A DNA stretch of 64,000 nucleotides from Trichosphaerium sp. ATCC 40318 (GCA_038496445.1 JALMLS010000424.1:62001-126000), one strand, 5' to 3'. Positions 3,593 to 64,000 are shown, counted from the first letter of the stretch. Translations and numbers: made by a program. Notes: generated by a model from the letters alone, not told the origin.

Positions 3593-6500
3593 ATGTATCG
3601 CCATACTTTAGCCAGTATTATGGCTGTGGCGCTGCTGATCATGCTTGTAAAAGCGCAACAAATACAATTCAAAGATTATTGTTTCCCTCCAGCAGGTATG
3701 TACCGAATACTTTGAAAACATGCGTTTATATCAATTGGGTCTGTTCTACCTACGTTTTTGGTGTAAACCGTCAACAACCGCGAAAAACGTCACCACAATA
3801 GCTTTGTTTACACGTTTACACGCTACCACGCCTCAAAATGCTTTATTTTTTCTGGCTAAACGGGTTTCTTCGTTTATCATCGTATTCATCCGTCTCCACT
3901 CTTCTAATCGTTCTATCTACGCATTAGGTTTAAAACAAGACAGTCTACAATCTATAGGAGGAGATACTTGGGCCATTGCTGGCGTACGTTCTGTTGCAAT
4001 ACATAGATACACAAAGGCATCTTGCATTGAAGTGAAATACGAGATGCTAACACGTATAATCGATATGTCATGGACTCCAGGATTTTTAGTGATTAGCACT
4101 GAGTTTAAAGGAGTTCGTAAAATAGACGTGTTCTCAACGTCTTTTACAGATGGTGATATCACTGATACTACAATTGTATTCATGCGTACACTTGAGCCAC
4201 CTGTTGGAAGTATTGCAGATAGTTATGGTGATATTGTTCATGGTGTTGATAACCATGTTGTTACAACTTTACAAGGAAGTGAAGTTGTTTTTTATAAAAT
4301 TGATAATGTTACATCAACTGTGACTGAAGAGACTATCTCTGTTGAAAGGGCTGGTGATAAACTGCCTTATTTTATACGTATTACTGACATTAAAGCTGTC
4401 AAGTTTGCTGAATCTCCACTGCAACGATTTATTGTTGCTGGAATACCAGATCCACTTTATATAAGTGACTTTAACACTGTGACGTGGTCTGTAGCATGGT
4501 TTGAAGGAAATACACTTATCGAAATGATTATACAAAGGTATACTAAATTCCCTCCTAAGGATGCATCTATACGTACGTAAGAATCCACGATCTTGAAGAT
4601 TCGAAGAAAGTCTTGAAAGTTTTACCAGTTTTTTTTTGTTTACTTTTTGTTTAGTTCTTTATCCTGGAGACCATAAAGTCGCTATCCGCTCATCTACTAG
4701 TGATCCAAATGACGAAGTTCTGGTGTTTACTGGATGTGGATTTCAGGACGCTATTGGGTATATTGGCTCTTCTGCAATAATGTCAGTTTTCACTGCAGAA
4801 TGTGAAGCTTACGGGTAATGCTTCGTTTTTTTTTGGGAAAGCTCCTACCTTCTAATTTTTTTTTCTAGGTTCCCTGAAGGTGTATGCGTTTACGGACTAT
4901 TCATAAACCCTGAGGATGGCATGTATAGTATAACAGGGTTTCATGGGGAAGTAAATAACTGTACTCAACGTTCACTTATACCAAGATTGTGGCCTGTAGG
5001 TAATATGCTTGCAGCACAGCCTGGTTTTATTATTTTAACAAGTGTTGTACATATACATATTGTTAAGCATGTTTCTTTGGGTGGTAGAGAAATATGTGGC
5101 GCTGGTCATGAGTACTCACCTATTGGGTGCGTACTGTGCCCTGTTGGCAAGTATTTAGGATACACAAAAGCGCAGCATGACTCATGTTTAGCCAACTTTA
5201 GCTCACCTGAGTGCCGCTTAGATTGCAAGGACTGCCCTGAAGGATCTTATTGTCCTGGCGGTGCTCTTCTACCTCTATACCCCGATGGATTGGTTGATTC
5301 TCTACAGTCTTATTATGGCTTTGAAGCATTGGATCCTCCTGATATAGATACAGTATTTATATCGCTTATCTTTACACTAAGATCATTACCTTTCTTCATA
5401 ACGTCGATTACTTTTCTTACAACTGCTGTATTGCTTATTGCTTGCGTTTGTATTCTACGTCATTGTGTTAAAGTTGCACGTGACTCAAGTTTTATAGATA
5501 TGCTGAAGTATATTGATTTGGACAAGTCGTCACAAATCAAACAAAACAAACTAGTGTCACGTGGTACAAGCCGTGGTGGTATCATAACCGTTATTATGCT
5601 ATTGTTTCTTACTGTTGGTATCGCTGCTATAGTATACATGTATGATAACTACGAACCTGTTGAGTATGAGTTTGATGCAGTATCTAAAGATACATTAAAC
5701 ACAAAACGTACAAAGCAACTAAGTTCTGCTTTACTTCTTGATGCTGATAGCAAGGAGCTGAAGTTCATGCTTGAGAATGAAGAGTACGTTGGCATTAATG
5801 TAGTGTTAATACTTCTTGCTTACACGTGTCTGCTTGTAGGAAAACGACTATCAACATAACAGTTACTTGGCTGCATTTTAACGGACAGTACGTCTTATGA
5901 TGCTTTTATTTTATTCTAAGTAGTTCTAATCGTTTTGCACAGATATTGTCAATGTAGCCCTAAGGTATATCGAGATAACAACTTGGTAGCAAAGCATCAA
6001 GTCGAAGGTTATAGGGATGATCTTAACGTTAGGTAAAGTACTGATCATGTTACGGAGTAGTACTTACTTTGTTTTTTAGTATGTCTGTAGTATTAAAAGG
6101 AAACTTCAATGAAGGACTTAATTATAGTTTCGCTTCTGGTAGTAGAAGTATAATAGATGGAACCTTAGATATTAGAAGCGGTCCTGCATCATTTGCTGGA
6201 ATACGAGTTGACTTGGTAACTCAAGGAAACCACCGTAAGTGCATTCATTTTATTTGTTTCCAAACCTTTTTTTTGTGTCTAAAAAGTTATTACAGCAACT
6301 TACGCAACGCACTACATACTCGCAGGTGACAATGTGTTCCTTCCCTCCCAAGTTGTTGAACTCACTATCACAACTACTTCTGTTATACGTACATCAGACC
6401 GCAAGCTTGGAAGCCAGGTAATTGATGGTACGTGCTTGCTGTTTTCATAAAAAAACCCGGTTCAGATCCGGATGAAACTTCGCTCTAATGACTTTGTTGA

Positions 6501-6940
6501 CAACAGGTTACACTGCACTTAGTTTTGGTGATGAACGTATACTTGGTGATGTATCTCTTCAAGTATCAGATGAAAAACTCTATACTGTAGAAGGTTATTC
6601 ATCAAGACTTGATATTTTATTCAAACACTCACAATCGATAATACTTGAAACAGAGTCTGTACAATTTACAGAAAAGACAGCATTGTTTTCATGTTTTATT
6701 GTTCTTACACTTATTGTTAACTTCTCTATATTATTGAACCAGCTATTAAGCTTTCTTTTATCATTGTACCATGATGTTGCAAAGAAATGTTGTGGAGTAA
6801 AACAAAAGGAAAAAAATGAACCATTATCTCTAATGATGAATGATGTTTCTGGGGTTGCGGATTCAAGAAATTCTTCTCAATCATATAAAAAATTATCTGA
6901 TCCTTCATCTTATTCGCCACCTACACAAGTTGAACAATAA
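3593..6940 (+). CDS. Signal-peptide, multi-TM membrane protein with Cys-rich (TNFR/GCC-like) repeats
   Basis: Signal peptide MYRHTLASIMAVALLIMLVKA. Repeats CVLCPVGKY...CKDCPEGSYCPGG. Several hydrophobic helices in ORFs 4921-5859 and 6488-6940. Confidence 0.65.
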
Positions 6941-7275
6941 AACTAATGAACACCTCGTCATATTCTTTTTTATTTTTTTAATTTTAAACACGTGATCAAT
7001 GAAAGTCACTAAAACAAACGTTCAAATCCCAACTTTCTTTTTTTCCCCCACACCCACAGTATGAACTTTATCAATGTGTTCCGGAAAAAAGCGGACGCTA
7101 TCAGAATCGTAACGTCATTTGTCCAAAAGCGTTAACAATTGTCTGTAACAACTGCAAGTGGTGCTTACTGGTTCTATCACTAAACAAATGATAGTGTGAA
7201 CCAATATGAATCAAAATACAGTTGTACAATGCAAAGTCTAAAAACTGTTCACTGTACAAACGTCTACGCGCAACC

Positions 7276-10185
7276 ATGCCAAAAAAGATTGATTTGGCAG
7301 TTTTTGAGGAACCGTCGACTTAACTTAACTACAACGGTCTTTTTGGCCGGTTTCTTCACTCAATATGTCGTAGCAAGGATGTATGTACGTACTGTAAACT
7401 GTTTGACATCCCAATTTGTAATTAACAGTAATAGCTTCCCAAAGACTTCACTTTTTCAGCCTGTGAGCTTATTGAGAGCGATGCGGCAAAGGCTAGTGTC
7501 ACTGCCAATGCACGGCAACAACCAGAGACACTAGACCTAATTGTTGCGATAAACGACAATGCTGTGAGGCTTTCGTACGTTTTTTAACGCGGTACGTACT
7601 TCCTAAAGCCAACAAACGGTTAGGGAAACTGCCAAACAAACTGCAATGCTTTCAATAAGGGCGTTTAATACCGCCGCCAGGGCCATGGTGAAAGAAGGAG
7701 GCAAAAAACAACAAACTTGTACGCCGCACTTGACATACTGTTTCGACGCCGCTGATAAACGCTGTAGTATTGGCGACTGCCCTAAGAGATTTGAACGAAA
7801 CACTTGAGAGAGTAAAAATACAAACTCTTGAGGCAAACGGAAACAATGAACAAAAAGACGAAGACGACGTAATACAGACACTATCAGAGGTCAGAAGATC
7901 GTACGACGCTCAAAAAAACCACCCAATCAATTATTTTCATTTTGTTCGAATGCACCTCAACTGATTTTTTGAAAGAGGTACTATTTGGCACAGGCACCAA
8001 CGTGTTTACATATATACGGATAGAACAGTACGATTAATGAACATAAAAAGAAGAATTAATCGCCAAAAAACCTGAAAAATAGCCCAAAAACTGATCTTTC
8101 TCTAGATGCTGAATAGCGCTGATATTAAATTCTTCATCGCGAATACGCGTGGAATGACAGAAGATCCGTTAGGTACGTTTTTATGTAAAGACAACTACCG
8201 ACAAAGACAAGTCGGAAAAGGAAGAGGAAAAAAAAGAAATTTTTGAATTTTTTTTGCTGACTAGTACTGTTGTAGGCTACATATTTTATGTTGTAGACAT
8301 AGGATGTTATGTCCTTGAGTTACCCAAAGAGTTTGTAAGTATTATACTTGGAGACTGGACATGTATGACTATTCCTGTACACATATACGCGGAGCCACTT
8401 CCAAAAGAATACAAAGTAACTTTGCCATAAATTAATCTCGCTGCTTACGCTATTTAGCCAGAGAGGCCAGCTATAACACCTGTATCAAAGGACGCTAATA
8501 TTTTAGAACTGCCCATTGAAGTTATTATTACTATTTGCGGTACGTCAATGGCACATCATTGAACAAACTTTTTTTTCCTATTTTTTTCTGACAAGTTGCC
8601 AATTAGATAACTTTAGTTTCTTGACGCTTGTGAAACTCGCCCAAGTTTCAAAACAGTGTAAGAAGATTGCTTATACACCTTACTTATGGAAAGTATTGTG
8701 TGATAAGATATTTCCAACAATACAAAACGGTAAAGTACGCACCAACAAAAACTTGCTTATTTAGTTGTCCTAAGACGTTTATAGGATATAGTCAACTGGA
8801 GAGACGAATTCACTCACCAAAGGCGTGTTTATGCTATCATGAGACATAAATTCACATTAATGCATACAGAACGTATGCGTCAAAGACACTGGATGGTAAA
8901 TTTTTTTTGTTCCTTCCTTGGTTGTTCCTCACCTTATTATCAGCGGTGTGGAGTTCATATGTTCCATCCTGTTAATGGTCGCCGTGGATTTGATCTTGTA
9001 AAGCCTAGTAAAGAGCTTATTGATAGTAAACCATCTCTAGATAAAATGGTTGCTATGTTAAAGAGAGAGGAGGAGTTACGTCTTTCTGATTCTGTTCAAG
9101 CAAAATTCTCCAATCCAGATAATGATGCCATACACGTTGCTGCACATGTTCAAGGTACGCTCCCACGTTTGTTTAAGTTACTTTGTGTCCATGTTTGTAA
9201 CCTGTTTAATGTGTTCTGTAGAGCAAGTTATTGAAGAGTTTGGTTACAAAGATAAGAAGGCAGTGGACTATATTCGTTGTGCTCCTGGATTGTATCCAAA
9301 AAATGAGCTCATAACAAGAATACCACATTACCAGAAGTTTAACAGAGCACGACAGGGAGATCTAACACCTGGAAAACCGGCACCTCAAGCAAAACTTGCC
9401 TACCTCAATGGCACAAACGTACTTTTTTTTTGCTATTTTTCTTGATTTATGGCTCATCTTTGTAGGTAATGTTGCATGATTATATGACGACTCACTTTAG
9501 TAATGGTAAACCGACAGTCATTATTTCTGGTTCTTATACGTGACTACCGTTTTGTTCCTATGTGGTAAGAACTGACAGCATTAATTTCTCTGAAAGAGTT
9601 TTCTAGTCTGTAGTTTTTATTTTTATCTTCGTTCAACATACTTGCCTCTGATTATTTATTTTATAGTCTGACATGCATGAATTGCTTGTCAAGCACGGTA
9701 GGAACGTTAATTTTCTGACAGGTACATAGATATTCCTTAGAATATTGTGTTGTGCTAATGTTTTCGTTTAGTGTACATTGTCGAGGCACACGCCTCTGAT
9801 GAGTGGCCTGTCGGAGACCCATTGAAAATTACGCAACCTAGAACAACAATAGAAAGATGTGGGGTCGCTAGGTCTTTCGTAAAAGAATACCAGTATCAGG
9901 TACTACTCATACCGTAATCACGTGCATGTTGCTTATTAAAAAACACTTTTTAGTTGCCTATGCTTGTGGACACGATTGAGAATAGCTTTGAGCAGGCCTA
10001 TGCTGCATGGCCTATTAGATTCTATGTTATTGAAGATGATATCGTTACATTTGTTGCCCAGCCCGATGAGATGAATACATACGACTCCATACCAGCTGTA
10101 CGTATTTTTCAAATTACAAAGTTGTTTTCTCATTCTTTAACTCTAGCGTTTGGATAAAGTCCTTACAGCAAAGTTTAGCGCTTAA
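7276..10185 (+). CDS. F-box + iodothyronine-deiodinase-like selenoprotein (in-frame TGA 9541-9543 read as Sec)
   Basis: Spliced reading gives the F-box LELPIEVIITICDNFSFLTLVKLAQVSKQCKKIAYTPYLWK, then deiodinase motifs PTVIISGSYT(TGA)LPF, VYIVEAHASDEW and VDTIENSFEQAYAAWPIRFYVI. Stop TAA at 10183-10185. Exons upstream of about 8280 are less certain. Confidence 0.85.
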
Positions 10186-10209
10186 ATAACAAAGCGTTGT
10201 AAGTTTATT

Positions 10210-10305
10210 TTCTATACATCTTTGACACGTGACTGTTTACTTTCAAATCGCCTTTAAAACTCAGCGAAAAAGTACACAAGAGAAACAAAGTAAGTTGTAA
10301 GAGAA
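10210..10305 (+). promoter_or_regulatory. SECIS element (type II) in the 3' UTR of the deiodinase-like gene
   Basis: Core GTGAC (10229-33) / AGAG (10279-82) giving tandem G.A pairs. Helix II TGTTTACTTT/AAAGTACACA (9 of 10 pairs). Apical AAA followed by ministem TCGC/GCGA. Helix I CTTTG/CAAAG. Confidence 0.85.
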
Positions 10306-10658
10306 TAAATAATATGTTAGTTAGAACTAAAAATTGGTCAACCAAAGAAACTACGTTATAAAGTTAAATCTAGATGCTTCAAGCAACGGCAAACCAAAAT
10401 TCGAAAGTTGTATGGTTGTTTATTGTGTAAATTTTAAATTAGTTACCAAGTGGTAACGCCAAGACGTAGGTTCTCCATTCAGTGTTTTGTTTGTAGGAGC
10501 CAGTAGATGAAAGGCTCTAACGTTTACTTTTGAAAAGTAGCGAAATTTCGTAAAAAACGAAATTTAGTCAAATTTCCCGCAAATTAAAATAATCCGAAGC
10601 AAGTTTTTTATGTCCGGAAGCAGGAAACCTATATCTCAAACATACGAAAACACATCTC

Positions 10659-11756
10659 ATGTTCATGAAAGCAGTATACCAATCATCATACGGTAACCCT
10701 AAGGACGTTTTAAGCTTAAGAAATGATATTCCGAAGCCTGTGCCCGAAGATGATCAAATAATCGTTAAAGTATGCTATGCATCAGTTCACCCAGATGTAT
10801 GGCATGTCGTATGGGGTTTACCGTACTTTTTAAGATTGATGGGAGCCGGTTTTTTGTCACCTATTAAGAAAATACCTGGGACGGATATGTCGGGCGTAGT
10901 AGATAGCGTTGGTAAGAACGTTTCAAAATTTAAAGAGGGACAGTACGTTTTTGGTGAAACATGCAGTAATTTCCAATGGGCAAACGCTGGTGCGTTTGCA
11001 GAGTATGTAGCAGTTAAAGAAAAAGATGTAGAGTTGAAACCGAAGAACTTGACATTCGCACAAGCATGTGGTTTACCAACATCAGGATTTATAGCGTACT
11101 ACAACCTCATGAACGAAGGCAAGTTCAAAAAAGGCCAATCAGTATTAATAAACGGCGCTGGCGGAGGTGTCGGACTTTTGACTATACAACTCGTAAAAGC
11201 ACTTGGAGGAACAGTCACAGCTGTTGACAGTAAGGAAAAGCTTGATTTAATGAAGTCTTTGGGCGCTGATGATGTCGTTGATTATGCTGAGAAGAATTTC
11301 ACTGAAAGTGATAAAAAATATGACTTGGTTTTTGATGTTCCGGGAAACTACCCAATAGATGATTGTAGAAGAGTTTTAAAAGGTTCTGAGTCTAAATACA
11401 TTTTGGTTGGACATGATAACTACGACAGAACAAGTCATCGTTGGCTTGGAAGTACGATACCGAAGATGCTTGGAGATGTTGCAAAGTACATGGTTTTTGG
11501 ACAAAAAGCAGTTGCAAAACCTATTGATGACAAGCCTGTTGCGACCACAGATAATGTTGATGTTGATTTCAATGATTATGTCTTTGGTAAAGAAAGCTCT
11601 TTGAAGGTCTTGTGTAGATTAGCAGAAGAAGGAAAGATGACCCAACCTATTGATTCTGTGTTCAGTCTAGATAAAGTTCCTGATGCTATTGAACATTTAC
11701 AAAATGGTAAAACTATTGGTAAAGTTGTTATTCAAATATGCAAAGACTACGACTAA
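10659..11756 (+). CDS. MDR-family NAD(P)-dependent oxidoreductase (quinone-reductase/zinc-free ADH-like), intronless
   Basis: Single 365-aa ORF with PGTDMSGVVDSVG, GAFAEY, VLINGAGGGVG, LGADDVVDY and GKVVI motifs. Confidence 0.92.
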   Translation: MFMKAVYQSSYGNPKDVLSLRNDIPKPVPEDDQIIVKVCYASVHPDVWHVVWGLPYFLRLMGAGFLSPIKKIPGTDMSGVVDSVGKNVSKFKEGQYVFGETCSNFQWANAGAFAEYVAVKEKDVELKPKNLTFAQACGLPTSGFIAYYNLMNEGKFKKGQSVLINGAGGGVGLLTIQLVKALGGTVTAVDSKEKLDLMKSLGADDVVDYAEKNFTESDKKYDLVFDVPGNYPIDDCRRVLKGSESKYILVGHDNYDRTSHRWLGSTIPKMLGDVAKYMVFGQKAVAKPIDDKPVATTDNVDVDFNDYVFGKESSLKVLCRLAEEGKMTQPIDSVFSLDKVPDAIEHLQNGKTIGKVVIQICKDYD

Positions 11757-15558: not shown

Positions 15559-16025
15559 ATGATTTGTGCTGTAAGTATGGATGTTTGTGGGGAATGATCT
15601 CAGATTTTAATGTAGGCCTAAAAAAGAAAGTGAGGGAAACTTAACTGTGTCAAGTCATGACACGCGGGCATTGGCACGTGACACTTTTTTGTGAATAGTA
15701 ACCGATAAAAACAGTCTTTACATACATGCGTTGTATGGGAGATATGGTACGGTTTGATAGAGTGGCAGTACAAAGTGATTCGCAAATGTCTTTACTCTGA
15801 CTGATAATTCAACAAGATTTCGACAAAGGTATGTTTTTTTGGTACCGTAGAAGAGTTACAAGGAAAAATAGAACAAGTCCGGTTTCACCTAATATATCTT
15901 CGTTCGTTTTACCGGTATGTGAACTTCATATCTTTGGAACGAAATACATTTCTCCGCTTTTTTTTTCGTTTTTTTTTTTTTACCTTTCTAGTGGTTAAAA
16001 CAGACCCTTATTATTGGCTTGGATT

Positions 16026-58620: not shown

Positions 58621-58631
58621 AAAAAAAAAAA
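58621..58631 (-). terminator. Pol III terminator (T-run) after tRNA-Leu
   Basis: Eleven T on the minus strand immediately 3' of the tRNA-Leu discriminator. Confidence 0.8.
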
Positions 58632-58719
58632 TGCAGAGAGTGGGACTCGAACCCACACGTGGTTACACACCACACTGCGTCCTTAACGCAGCCTCATTAA
58701 CCAATTCGAGCACCTCTGC
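58632..58719 (-). tRNA. tRNA-Leu(AAG)
   Basis: GCAGAGG/TCTCTGC acceptor stem, CTGCG-TTAAGGA-CGCAG anticodon arm, long variable arm, GGTTCGAGTCC T-loop. Confidence 0.92.
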
Positions 58720-58727
58720 AAGGTATG

Positions 58728-58798
58728 TGGGACAACCAGGAATCGAACCTGAACTGCAGCACCTTCAATGCCATGTGCTTCCATTACACCATTATCCC
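58728..58798 (-). tRNA. tRNA with GAA anticodon (nominally Phe), atypical body
   Basis: GGGATAA/TTGTCCC acceptor, GTGT/GCAC D-stem, TGGCA-TTGAAGG-TGCTG anticodon arm, 4-nt variable loop, GGTTCGATTCC. Confidence 0.8.
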
Positions 58799-62095: not shown

Positions 62096-64000
62096 TACCT
62101 GGTTGAGCCTGCCAGGAGTGATAAGCTTTCTCGAAGGATTAAGCCATGCAAGCTCAGCAAAGAGGTATCCTCGGAGCCGCAAACGGCTCCTTAAAACGGT
62201 CGTAACCCACCCGACAAGACTAATAATGGTCACGTCATTTTGCACACAGGAACTCGTTTCCTAAACGCACTATAACCAAAACTCGTGGCCTCCCCCGCGG
62301 ATAACCGGGATTAAAGGAAACCTGCGGCTAATACGTAATGCGCCTAGCGCTGCCGATGGGCCCCTCTGCTGCAAGGACCCATCGGTCGCATCCAACGCTC
62401 AGGAGCGGACGATCACCCGATCCCATCTTGGTTCGCCAAGGGAAGCAGCCTCCCCTTAGGAAGCGGCGTCCGTACTCCGTCGGGAAGAGCGGCGTTGGGG
62501 CATGCGATGGAGTTACGAGGAGTTCTCTCTGACTAGACATGTTACTAAAAAAAGGTGTTAAGTTACACAAGGTGAAACTAGGTGAAAGAAAAATGAACAT
62601 TGTTCAAATCTCGATCCTTCGCCATGAATGTGCTTTTTCATAAAAAAGATCATATCGATATAAAGTTGAGAGTTCTCCCCCTCCACGAGTCGGAAGGGCG
62701 GCCGACCTATCAGCCAGGCGGTAGGGTAACGGCCTACCGCGGCAGTGACGGGTAACGGGGAACTAGGGTTCGGTTCCCGGAGAAGGGGCATTAGATACGG
62801 CCCCTGTACTTACGGGTAACAGCAGGCGCGTAACTTGGCCATTGATTGCAAATCGAGCCAGCGACTGAGTGTAACGAGGCCGGCATTTAAACCGGTCGTC
62901 GCAATGAGGGGCAACTGAATGTCGCCCTGAGAAACTATTGGAGGACAAGTTGGGTGCCAGCACCCGCGGTAACACCCACTCCGAAAGCTTATACTTTTGC
63001 TGTTGCTGTTAAAGCGCTCGCAGTCCAAACAACGACACAGCTGAGAGGGATAAGGTTTAGACGAGAATTTATTCTCTGACAAAACCCCCGACTCTTTTTC
63101 ATCGCCCGACCAGGCATAAATGGCTTCGCTCAAACGCAAGGTCAGTTTAGGCTTCGGCCGCTATGCCACCCACCAGCATCCTGGAATTGGGCTTTAAAAA
63201 AACAAAAACAACACTTTACCAAGTGCGACGCTCGAGTCTCATTTTACTAAGTATGAACAATATCCTGAAATGCAAGTCTGAGTGAAAACTTATGTTCTTC
63301 ATTAAGGGAATAAAAACATTGTGAATTATGCAAGTATTCTTGAGAAAAACTTGAGTTAGTCTTCACACTAATAAAGAACACACGATTACTAGGTGCGTAC
63401 GGGGTAGAGAGTGTGGTATCAGCGAGGAGTGAAATCTTTTGACCTGATCCAAACTACCCGAAGCGAAGGCGCTCTGCAAGGGCGTGGCCGGTGATCTAGA
63501 ACGATGGTGGAGGGAGCGAAGCGGATTAGAGACCCGTGTAGTCTCCACAGTAAACGATGCCGACTGAATGGGCGCCGGGCAAACCAAGGCTCGGGGCCCG
63601 TTCCCACGGGAAACCGAAGTAATCGGGCCCAGGGGGGAAGTATGGTCGCAAGGCTGAAACTTAAAGGCATTGACGGAGCAACACCACCAGGCTCTGGAGG
63701 CTGCGGCTCAATTTGACTCAACGCGCGACAACTTACCGGGATCGGACGCTCTAAGGGGACGAACAGACTGAAGGGTCTTTTCCGAGTTAGCTAACGGTGG
63801 TGCATGGTCGTTTTAGGCTCGTGGACTTATCTGTCAGGTTTATTCCGATAACGGGCGAGATCGCTACTGTCACATTGATTCCCCCGCCTCGTGCGGGACC
63901 CCTGTGCAGGACTGACGGCGAAAAGTCGTAAGAAGCGGCGGCTATAACAGATCCGGGATGCCCCCAGATATTCCGGGCCGCACGCGGCCTACACTGCTTA
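62096..64000 (+). rRNA. Highly divergent SSU (18S) rRNA gene, 3'-truncated by the window
   Basis: TACCTGGTTGAGCCTGCCAG, GATTAAGCCATGCA, CAGCAGGCGCGTAACTT, GTGCCAGCACCCGCGGTAA, TGGTCGCAAGGCTGAAACTTAAAGGCATTGACGG, GGTGGTGCATGG and GGGCCGCACGCG, in the expected order. Confidence 0.97.

Follow-up and report, generated by a model that had tools for sequence, protein, structure and literature searches.

A predicted amoebozoan selenoprotein that joins an F-box to a deiodinase-like domain, encoded in the genome of Trichosphaerium sp. ATCC 40318

F-box proteins with an enzyme or a small-molecule sensor at the C-terminus include FBXL5 with its hemerythrin domain, KDM2A/B with a JmjC domain, Fbh1 with a helicase, and TIR1. 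The iodothyronine deiodinases DIO1-3 (Pfam PF00837; structures 4TR3 and 9H48) adopt a peroxiredoxin-like thioredoxin fold with selenocysteine (Sec, U) in the motif G-S-x-T-U-x-P-F, which is encoded by UGA and accompanied by a selenocysteine insertion sequence (SECIS) in the 3' untranslated region (3'UTR). Features of both groups were found in a gene at positions 7379-10185 (+) of a 64,000-nucleotide (nt) stretch of DNA from Trichosphaerium sp. ATCC 40318 (GCA_038496445.1, JALMLS010000424.1:62001-126000), which is called the window below and is numbered from its first letter. The locus is very probably one gene that encodes an F-box and a deiodinase-like domain in a single chain, with Sec at an in-frame UGA. 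As in FBXL5, KDM2A/B, Fbh1 and TIR1, the partner of the F-box in the predicted chain was a domain for catalysis or sensing and not a set of WD40, LRR or Kelch repeats, and the fold, the Sec motif, the UGA with a SECIS-type hairpin in the 3'UTR and the loop-D edge Y-I-x-E-A-H-x-S-D-x-W were shared with DIO1-3. By profile criteria the predicted product belongs to both the deiodinase sequence family and the F-box family. Unlike DIO1-3, the amoeba protein had no N-terminal membrane anchor, and about 480 residues, comprising an N-terminal region, the F-box and a helical domain, preceded the Sec. To our knowledge no F-box protein of the FBXL5, KDM2A/B, Fbh1 or TIR1 type contains selenocysteine or a thioredoxin-fold redox domain, and none was found in the literature search.

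A deiodinase homologue has been described from another amoebozoan, Dictyostelium discoideum, which contains Sec and is 37-39% identical to the animal enzymes (Lobanov et al. 2007, PMC2375036). The SECIS elements of Dictyostelium are of type II with an unpaired AAA (PMC2375036). Compared by published description only, the Dictyostelium selenoprotein shares with the Trichosphaerium gene its amoebozoan origin, the Sec and a type II SECIS with an unpaired AAA; no F-box is mentioned for it in PMC2375036 (0 occurrences). A deiodinase-family selenoenzyme is also tied to ubiquitination in the case of DIO2, which is ubiquitinated at Lys234 and Lys241 (PMC11592359). The ligase of DIO2 acts in trans, whereas the amoeba protein would carry a ligase-docking module in its own chain. 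Selenoproteins and Skp1-cullin-F-box (SCF) ligases are both well studied, and a protein belonging to both was not found described. A literature search for an F-box selenoprotein, for this family, or for selenoprotein surveys listing it returned no description; its coverage was incomplete, so that this is absence of evidence. Within the literature searched, the original prediction that no F-box selenoprotein had been described and that the fusion was not already catalogued therefore held. The deiodinase and F-box families themselves are known; what is new is the domain architecture, the helical domain and a family that apparently always requires Sec.

Three-frame translation and inspection of splice sites revealed that the DNA around the gene was eukaryotic with short introns, and a first in-frame chain of exons was read at about 8458-10185. 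The spliced model contained 17 exons and 608 codons, including Sec at codon 480, for a product of about 69.8 kDa. All 16 introns had GT..AG boundaries and were 42-103 nt long, with GTACG at ten of the donors and TAG at 14 of the acceptors. The gene model was collinear, by blastn, tblastn and global alignment, with an independent spliced transcript of a related species, a 1934-nt contig (L001; JGI 3300016894, also under MMETSP identifiers) that carries an F-box open reading frame (ORF) followed by a T4_deiodinase ORF. The blastn match was collinear across 7768-10282 and the tblastn match began at 7444. Because the whole model was collinear with this transcript, it goes beyond what chance would give, and the in-frame splicing that had been proposed to join the F-box, a helical stretch and the deiodinase-like domain was borne out. 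The locus is a single gene, and in the ortholog a single mRNA. The protein of the first ORF of the transcript (P0001, 476 residues), which was also the best match in the HMMER search described below, is referred to as the ortholog.

The 5' end of the model was set with the help of the ortholog. A first model that started at ATG 8365 was dropped because P0001 has about 190 more N-terminal residues, which match window exons from 7435. A start at ATG 7277, as in the original prediction, is unlikely, since reading from there met TAA at 7322 and no usable donor lay in between. The N-terminus of the ortholog fits a start at ATG 7379 with a 50-nt intron behind a GTACGT donor, and ATG 7379 was taken as the likely start codon. 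The features of the gene, all on the plus strand, are as follows.

7379-7384 (+): exon 1, ATG TAT, probable start; GTACGT donor and 50-nt intron, which place the N-terminus in the length class of the ortholog
7435-7574 (+): exon 2, tblastn match to P0001 residues 4-46; TAG acceptor and GTACGT donor
7624-7718 (+): exon 3, tblastn match to P0001 residues 49-73
7768-7900 (+): exon 4, blastn match to L001 260-380
7976-8027 (+): exon 5, blastn match to L001 415-439, 96% identity
8106-8172 (+): exon 6, blastn match to L001 442-524
8276-8415 (+): exon 7, which with exons 5-6 codes for an alpha/beta module like an RNA-recognition motif (RRM) ahead of the F-box
8458-8539 (+): exon 8, start of the F-box (ILELPIEVIITIC, from 8500)
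8607-8734 (+): exon 9, remainder of the F-box, to 8701
8785-8895 (+): exon 10, start of the helical domain (NWRDEF...RMRQRHWM), from family alignments
8944-9154 (+): exon 11, continuation of the helical domain, including CGVHMFHPVNGRRGFD and MLKREEELRLS; R and Q residues invariant in family alignments
9222-9418 (+): exon 12, last part of the helical domain (IPHYQKFNR), then the first thioredoxin-fold strands (GDLTPGKPAP...)
9466-9564 (+): exon 13, active-site motif SGSYT-U-LPFC, identical in the L001 transcript
9541-9543 (+): in-frame TGA, read as Sec (codon 480), aligned with the Sec position of mouse Dio3
9667-9721 (+): exon 14, L001 match by blastn and global alignment
9772-9899 (+): exon 15, YIVEAHASDEW...ERCGVAR, Pfam T4_deiodinase match
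9954-10097 (+): exon 16, AYAAWPIRFY..., Pfam T4_deiodinase match
10147-10185 (+): exon 17 with the TAA stop (10183-10185); C-terminus the same in the ortholog
10220-10290 (+): putative SECIS, type II, from the fold, a strict pattern scan and conservation in the ortholog
10304-10309 (+): AATAAA, a likely polyadenylation signal by sequence inspection, 14 nt past the SECIS

The TGA at 9541-9543 was located in SGSYT-TGA-LPF, and after splicing the motifs VYIVEAHASDEW and AYAAWPIRFY followed it in frame. Together with the Pfam T4_deiodinase matches, these results confirmed the deiodinase-like domain with a TGA at the Sec position that had been proposed. The T4_deiodinase scores of the window were taken exon by exon: exon 15 alone (9774-9899) gave 19.8 bits (E 5e-4), with mouse Dio3 as its sole PDB sequence match, and exon 16 alone (9954-10097) gave 16.8 bits (E 4e-3). 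A longer stretch was scored in the post-UGA part of L001, which reached 66.1 bits (cutoff 27) over profile positions 116-219 and was 97% identical to that of the window. The alignment of this part to Dio3 (4TR3, E 8e-14, from P172) and to Dio2 (9H48) starts with the Pro-Phe directly after their Sec, which places the UGA at the catalytic position. The proton relay of Dio2 consists of Ser127, Thr129, Tyr157, Glu160, His162 and His182 (PMC11592359). In comparison with the Dio enzymes, the Ser and Thr of S-x-T-U, the Tyr, Glu and first His of Y-I-x-E-A-H, and the Trp of the loop-D edge were kept. Two conserved cysteines were also observed: of the nine sequences, the window among them, in which the motif was read through, six had Cys at Sec+4 (U-L-P-F-C) and L003, L008 and L012 had Arg, while the Cys of E-R-C was kept in all eight sequences that reach that position.

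An alignment of the window product with that of L001 gave identities that increased along the chain, from 52% (N-terminal region) through 75% (F-box) and 93% (helical domain) to 97% (post-UGA part). Across the 128 post-UGA codons, 33 nucleotide differences fell at first, second and third codon positions as 2, 3 and 28, respectively, and 27 codon changes were synonymous and 4 non-synonymous, which marks the post-UGA part as translated and under strong constraint. In the L001 transcript the TGA was retained in frame and the exon joins were the same as in the model. An in-frame TGA was found at the same site in eight relatives (L001-L004, L006-L008 and L012). In L002, an intron-free genomic contig, and in L003, L004, L006 and L007, the upstream ORF ended with TGA and the frame continued into LP[FY]C.YV...YI.EAH..DEWP.G, and in the more distant L008 and L012 the TGA was followed by in-frame PPFRDSV. 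The reading of L005 was broken by an intron.

The stop-free segment 8785-9231 (two exons and the read-through intron) was searched exhaustively with HMMER against 1.84 billion representatives and yielded 19 family proteins. Thirteen of them stopped exactly before the TGA (...GS[YFIA][TS]), and the others were fragments or were interrupted by introns. The UniProt entry A0A6B2LE57 from Arcella intermedia (P0002, 250 residues), named 'F-box domain-containing protein', likewise ended at the residue before the Sec codon; gene finders thus split or truncate the gene, as had been anticipated. All records of the family in the databases are cut short or divided at the UGA, and their annotation needs correcting. 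No Cys-containing homologue was found, either among the 19 HMMER proteins, none of which continued with Cys, or in two word-index searches, and from these sequences the family is apparently always Sec. Selenoprotein families usually include a Cys form; that none was found here points to an essential role of selenium chemistry in the function. A word-index search with the post-UGA piece of L001 returned 87 clusters of 78-187 residues (most of 103-136), which were post-UGA fragments mostly from metatranscriptomes. Counted as clusters, the family comprises at least about 20 for the N-terminal half and at least 87 for the post-UGA half.

In the 3'UTR, a hairpin of type II was found with the layout CUUUG-ACAC-G-UGA-C-UGUUUACUUU-C-AAA-UCGC-(12-nt loop)-GCGA-A-AAAGUACACA-A-GA-G-AAA-CAAAG. 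Helix I was formed by CUUUG/CAAAG, and the sheared UGA/GA core by G-UGA-C (10229-10233) with A-GA-G (10279-10282); the core at 10229-10232 started 44 nt past the TAA stop. Helix II, between 10234-10243 and 10269-10278, comprised 10 bp with one mismatch, and was followed by an AAA bulge (10245-10247) 12 nt from the core and by a mini-stem UCGC/GCGA of 4 bp. RNAfold recovered helix II and the mini-stem. The strict SECIS pattern matched twice in the 128 kb of the two strands, where shuffled sequence gave 1.85 matches on average, and a chance match within 150 nt after the stop has a probability of about 0.002. In the 3'UTR of the ortholog both arms of the SECIS were kept, with only two changes, one at the mismatch position and one from U-A to U-G, and indels and substitutions were located upstream and in the apical loop. 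Canonical AUGA...AAA...[UG]GA elements were found 29-163 nt past the stops in L002, L004, L005, L006 and L008; that of L004 matched Rfam SECIS_1 over the full length with 21.3 bits, short of the gathering score (35). No SECIS was seen in L007 within its 102 nt of 3'UTR, and MAFFT alignment did not bring the stems of the relatives' elements into register. No tRNA-Sec was found within the 64-kb window.

Other candidates for the SECIS were rejected. An AUGA at 10507 had no complementary 3' strand with GA and lay past the AATAAA at 10304. The strict-pattern match at 15594 (+), AUGA...AA...GA, had no upstream coding sequence on its strand and was taken as a chance match, of which about two are expected per window. 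A scan with a relaxed SECIS pattern was too permissive to inform.

Several results weigh against reading the locus as a deiodinase-like selenoprotein gene. The expression evidence is the transcript of the ortholog, which is about 78% identical and comes from a related species rather than from the host. The SECIS that had been predicted about 45 nt after the stop was found there as a type II hairpin, but its core, GUGA...AGAG, was non-canonical: it departs from the usual AUGA and from the KGAW of the core consensus UGAN/KGAW (PMC3753652). The folding energy was no better than that of shuffles (z 0.41), and no Rfam SECIS match was found in 10100-10700 (E up to 10) or in the gathering scan of the whole window. 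At the active site, the second relay His of the animal enzymes (Dio3 His219) was Pro in the window and in all relatives. The Arg275 clamp of Dio3, the proposed holder of the thyronine carboxylate, was also absent; the window had VAQPDEMN in this region, which was placed by eye as the HMMER alignment stops at Dio3 residue 272, and Arg was found only in L002. Since neither the Arg clamp nor this relay His was conserved, an iodothyronine-type substrate, and with it the classical deiodinase chemistry on thyronines, is unlikely. The gene is not called an iodothyronine deiodinase here, because the product has no membrane anchor and two or more residues that serve the substrate or the relay in the animal enzymes are missing from it.

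The non-canonical SECIS without an Rfam match, and the treatment of the TGA as a stop by gene callers and UniProt, would also fit an ordinary stop codon, with a 479-residue F-box protein and a downstream deiodinase-like sequence left as an untranslated relic or pseudogene. This explanation is highly improbable, however: the part after the TGA was the best conserved of the gene, with the excess of synonymous over non-synonymous changes given above, and was in frame in 8/8 relatives; termination at the TGA would cut the thioredoxin fold in two at the position of the catalytic Sec of Dio3; and SECIS-type hairpins lay past the real stop in five independent lineages. Automatic calls gave two ORFs on every contig, as would be expected if two neighbouring genes, one for an F-box protein and one for a small deiodinase, had been merged by the model. 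In contrast, both ORFs were found together on single transcript contigs, with a spacing of 18 to about 70 nt that is simply the distance to the next ATG, GTG or TTG; no conserved start codon was present past the TGA; and the strands and the G-S-x-T motif that precede the Sec were in the upstream ORF. Such a merger is extremely improbable. Reassignment of UGA to a standard amino acid in the host, so that the codon would not be Sec, is barely conceivable, as the lone in-frame TGA of the gene was at the catalytic site, the same was observed in several amoebozoan and environmental lineages, and SECIS elements were present. Moreover, three of the ten longest open frames in the window ended in TGA, so the codon is not obviously reassigned.

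The F-box that had been claimed at about 8500-8730 was present there, coded by 8500-8539 and 8607-8701 and including ILELPIEVIITICDNFSFLTLVKLAQVSKQCKKIAYTPYLWKVLC. The spliced F-box of 55 residues scored above the cutoffs of both Pfam families, PF00646 and PF12937, with 35.0 bits for F-box-like (cutoff 24.3) and 32.6 bits for F-box (cutoff 20.5), and exon 9 alone (8609-8734) gave 22.4 bits for F-box-like (E 1e-4). The F-box of P0001 gave 32.6 (F-box-like) and 30.8 bits (F-box). Among the family proteins, the F-box was above the Pfam cutoffs in P0001, P0003, P0005 and P0011 and was listed by precomputed Pfam annotation for P0002, P0026 and P0027, while the scores of P0008 and P0009/P0022 were below the cutoffs and a Pfam profile scan did not detect it in P0012 or P0019. 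The AlphaFold2 (AF2) model of P0001 had a mean predicted local distance difference test (pLDDT) score of 68.7, with values of 80-95 in the F-box and the helical domain. The top Foldseek rows for this model were Skp1-bound F-box proteins, namely Fbw7 (2ovq), FBXO31 (5vzt) and Fbx4/FBXO4 (3l2o); the F-boxes superposed with a root-mean-square deviation of 1.7-3.3 Å over 56-90 columns, at weak E-values of 0.05-0.5.

Just before the F-box, residues 126-196 of P0001 (window exons 5-7, 7976-8415) formed a beta-alpha-beta-beta-alpha-beta arrangement in the AF2 model. This RRM-like module gave weak Foldseek matches to RNA-recognition motifs, for example to RRM2 of TDP-43 (3d2w_A), with a template modelling (TM) score of 0.73 on the target. 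The N-terminal 215 residues, with the RRM-like module included, matched no Pfam family. No N-terminal hydrophobic segment was found, and the top 19-residue hydropathy value (1.66) fell within the F-box; as the sole hydrophobic peak is inside the F-box, the product is predicted to have no membrane anchor.

Between the F-box and the Sec domain, an all-helical domain of about 150 residues (window 8785-9361, P0001 residues 277-440) was strongly conserved in the family alignments. The helical sequence (MLKREEELRLS...) had been described in the original prediction as a linker; the sequence was indeed present, but it formed a strongly conserved domain rather than a linker. Its motifs were RM..R.WM.CGVHMFHPVNGR.GFD, MLKRE.ELRLS, Q.QV..EFG and IPHY.KFNR. 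No Pfam match was found for this domain, the pLDDT of its AF2 model was 82.4, and the best structural match in the PDB reached only Z 5.0. The helical domain is new, without known relatives in Pfam or PDB.

All named sources of the family were Amoebozoa (Arcella intermedia, Luapelamoeba hula and Pellita catalonica), which are known here only as protein fragments, and the remaining sources were metagenome, metatranscriptome and Logan contigs. On the sequences collected, the fusion is a conserved family in Amoebozoa and is not peculiar to the Trichosphaerium genome. In two contigs from soil metatranscriptomes, L008 (1-2144) and L012 (1-2004), C1_2 (DC1) and ZZ zinc fingers were found in place of the F-box. 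In this sister branch the helical domain was retained, as were the in-frame TGA (AGSST-U-PPFRDSV), the deiodinase domain and a SECIS with AUGA. Because DC1/ZZ fingers replace the F-box there, the helical and Sec domains form the invariant unit, and the interaction modules at the N-terminus vary. Across the family, a Sec-dependent redox domain is built into one chain with modules for protein interaction, which are an F-box or DC1/ZZ fingers.

Two further observations were made on the contigs of relatives. A second, longer isoform of the ortholog from the same sample (P0118, MMETSP Transcript_12372, on a 2010-nt contig) may hold the complete SECIS and 3' end. On L002, a gene for a Kelch-repeat F-box protein adjoined the family gene on the opposite strand (5038-7311, -), which is probably coincidental.

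Taken together, the predicted product is a soluble four-part protein of about 70 kDa: poorly conserved N-terminal helices with the RRM-like module, a canonical F-box, the helical domain, and a peroxiredoxin-like thioredoxin fold of the deiodinase family. The Sec in S-Y-T-U-L-P-F-C is very probably encoded by the UGA at 9541-9543 and decoded with the type II SECIS in the short 3'UTR. The helical and Sec domains may work together as a single module that recognises a target and carries out redox (or dehalogenating) catalysis. The F-box would dock this module on Skp1, so that the protein would act as an SCF substrate receptor, and ubiquitination would in this way be coupled to a target caught at the selenol or to a redox state detected at that site. 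In the original prediction such an adaptor could link redox state or halogenated aromatics to ubiquitination, and short and long isoforms would arise according to the selenium supply; both ideas remain hypothetical. Failure of Sec insertion would give either a 479-residue (55 kDa) F-box protein without the catalytic half or mRNA decay, as four introns lie 3' of the UGA.

The domain at the C-terminus of characterised F-box proteins is normally the one that binds the substrate. For this reason the reading as an SCF substrate receptor, or adaptor, was slightly favoured, as a tentative proposal, over one in which the enzyme comes first. In the latter, which is also possible though short of probable, the protein would mainly be a Sec oxidoreductase or dehalogenase, and the F-box would serve only to control or position the protein itself, through self-turnover by SCF or through binding of Skp1 outside the cullin complex, and not to deliver other proteins to ubiquitination. 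The results that favour the enzyme weigh at the same time against the receptor. Constraint was highest in the catalytic half (97%) and lowest in the N-terminal parts (52-75%), with the F-box less conserved than the enzyme part; the sister branch kept the helical and Sec domains with DC1/ZZ fingers and no F-box, and P0019 showed neither module; and vertebrate Dio2 is itself under ubiquitin control, at the two lysines given above (PMC11592359). The N-terminal module may accordingly serve as a replaceable handle for targeting or regulation and not as the functional core. On the other side, the F-box was above the Pfam thresholds in at least six lineages, and the substrate-binding role of the domain that follows the F-box in characterised proteins speaks for the receptor. 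The conservation gradient and the module swap themselves fit both explanations equally well.

A stronger form of the substrate-receptor reading would make the protein the first subunit of a cullin-RING ubiquitin ligase to be a selenoprotein, with a Sec redox enzyme as the SCF recognition domain, redox-gated ubiquitination, and an output that depends on selenium supply through the recoding of UGA. This form is doubtful on the present evidence. As a part of it, the capture of the target would perhaps be covalent, via a selenenyl-sulfide or after oxidation or halogenation. The family offers a testable way into two questions, namely what role deiodinase-like enzymes have in organisms that lack thyroid hormone and whether a selenol can gate ubiquitination.

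Three other features were observed in the window. Directly 3' of the gene, at 10659-11756 (+), an intron-free ORF of 365 codons coded for a member of the zinc-type alcohol dehydrogenase / medium-chain dehydrogenase/reductase (MDR) family (ADH_zinc_N_2, 70.6 bits; ADH_N, 49.1 bits). Genes for tRNA-Leu(AAG) and tRNA-Phe(GAA), with 6 nt between them, were located at 58631-58798 (-), about 3.3 kb upstream of a small-subunit (SSU) rRNA gene. This SSU rRNA gene, of eukaryotic type, occupied 62096-64000 (+) and ran off the end of the window, with a moderate Rfam match of 827 bits over 1509 positions.

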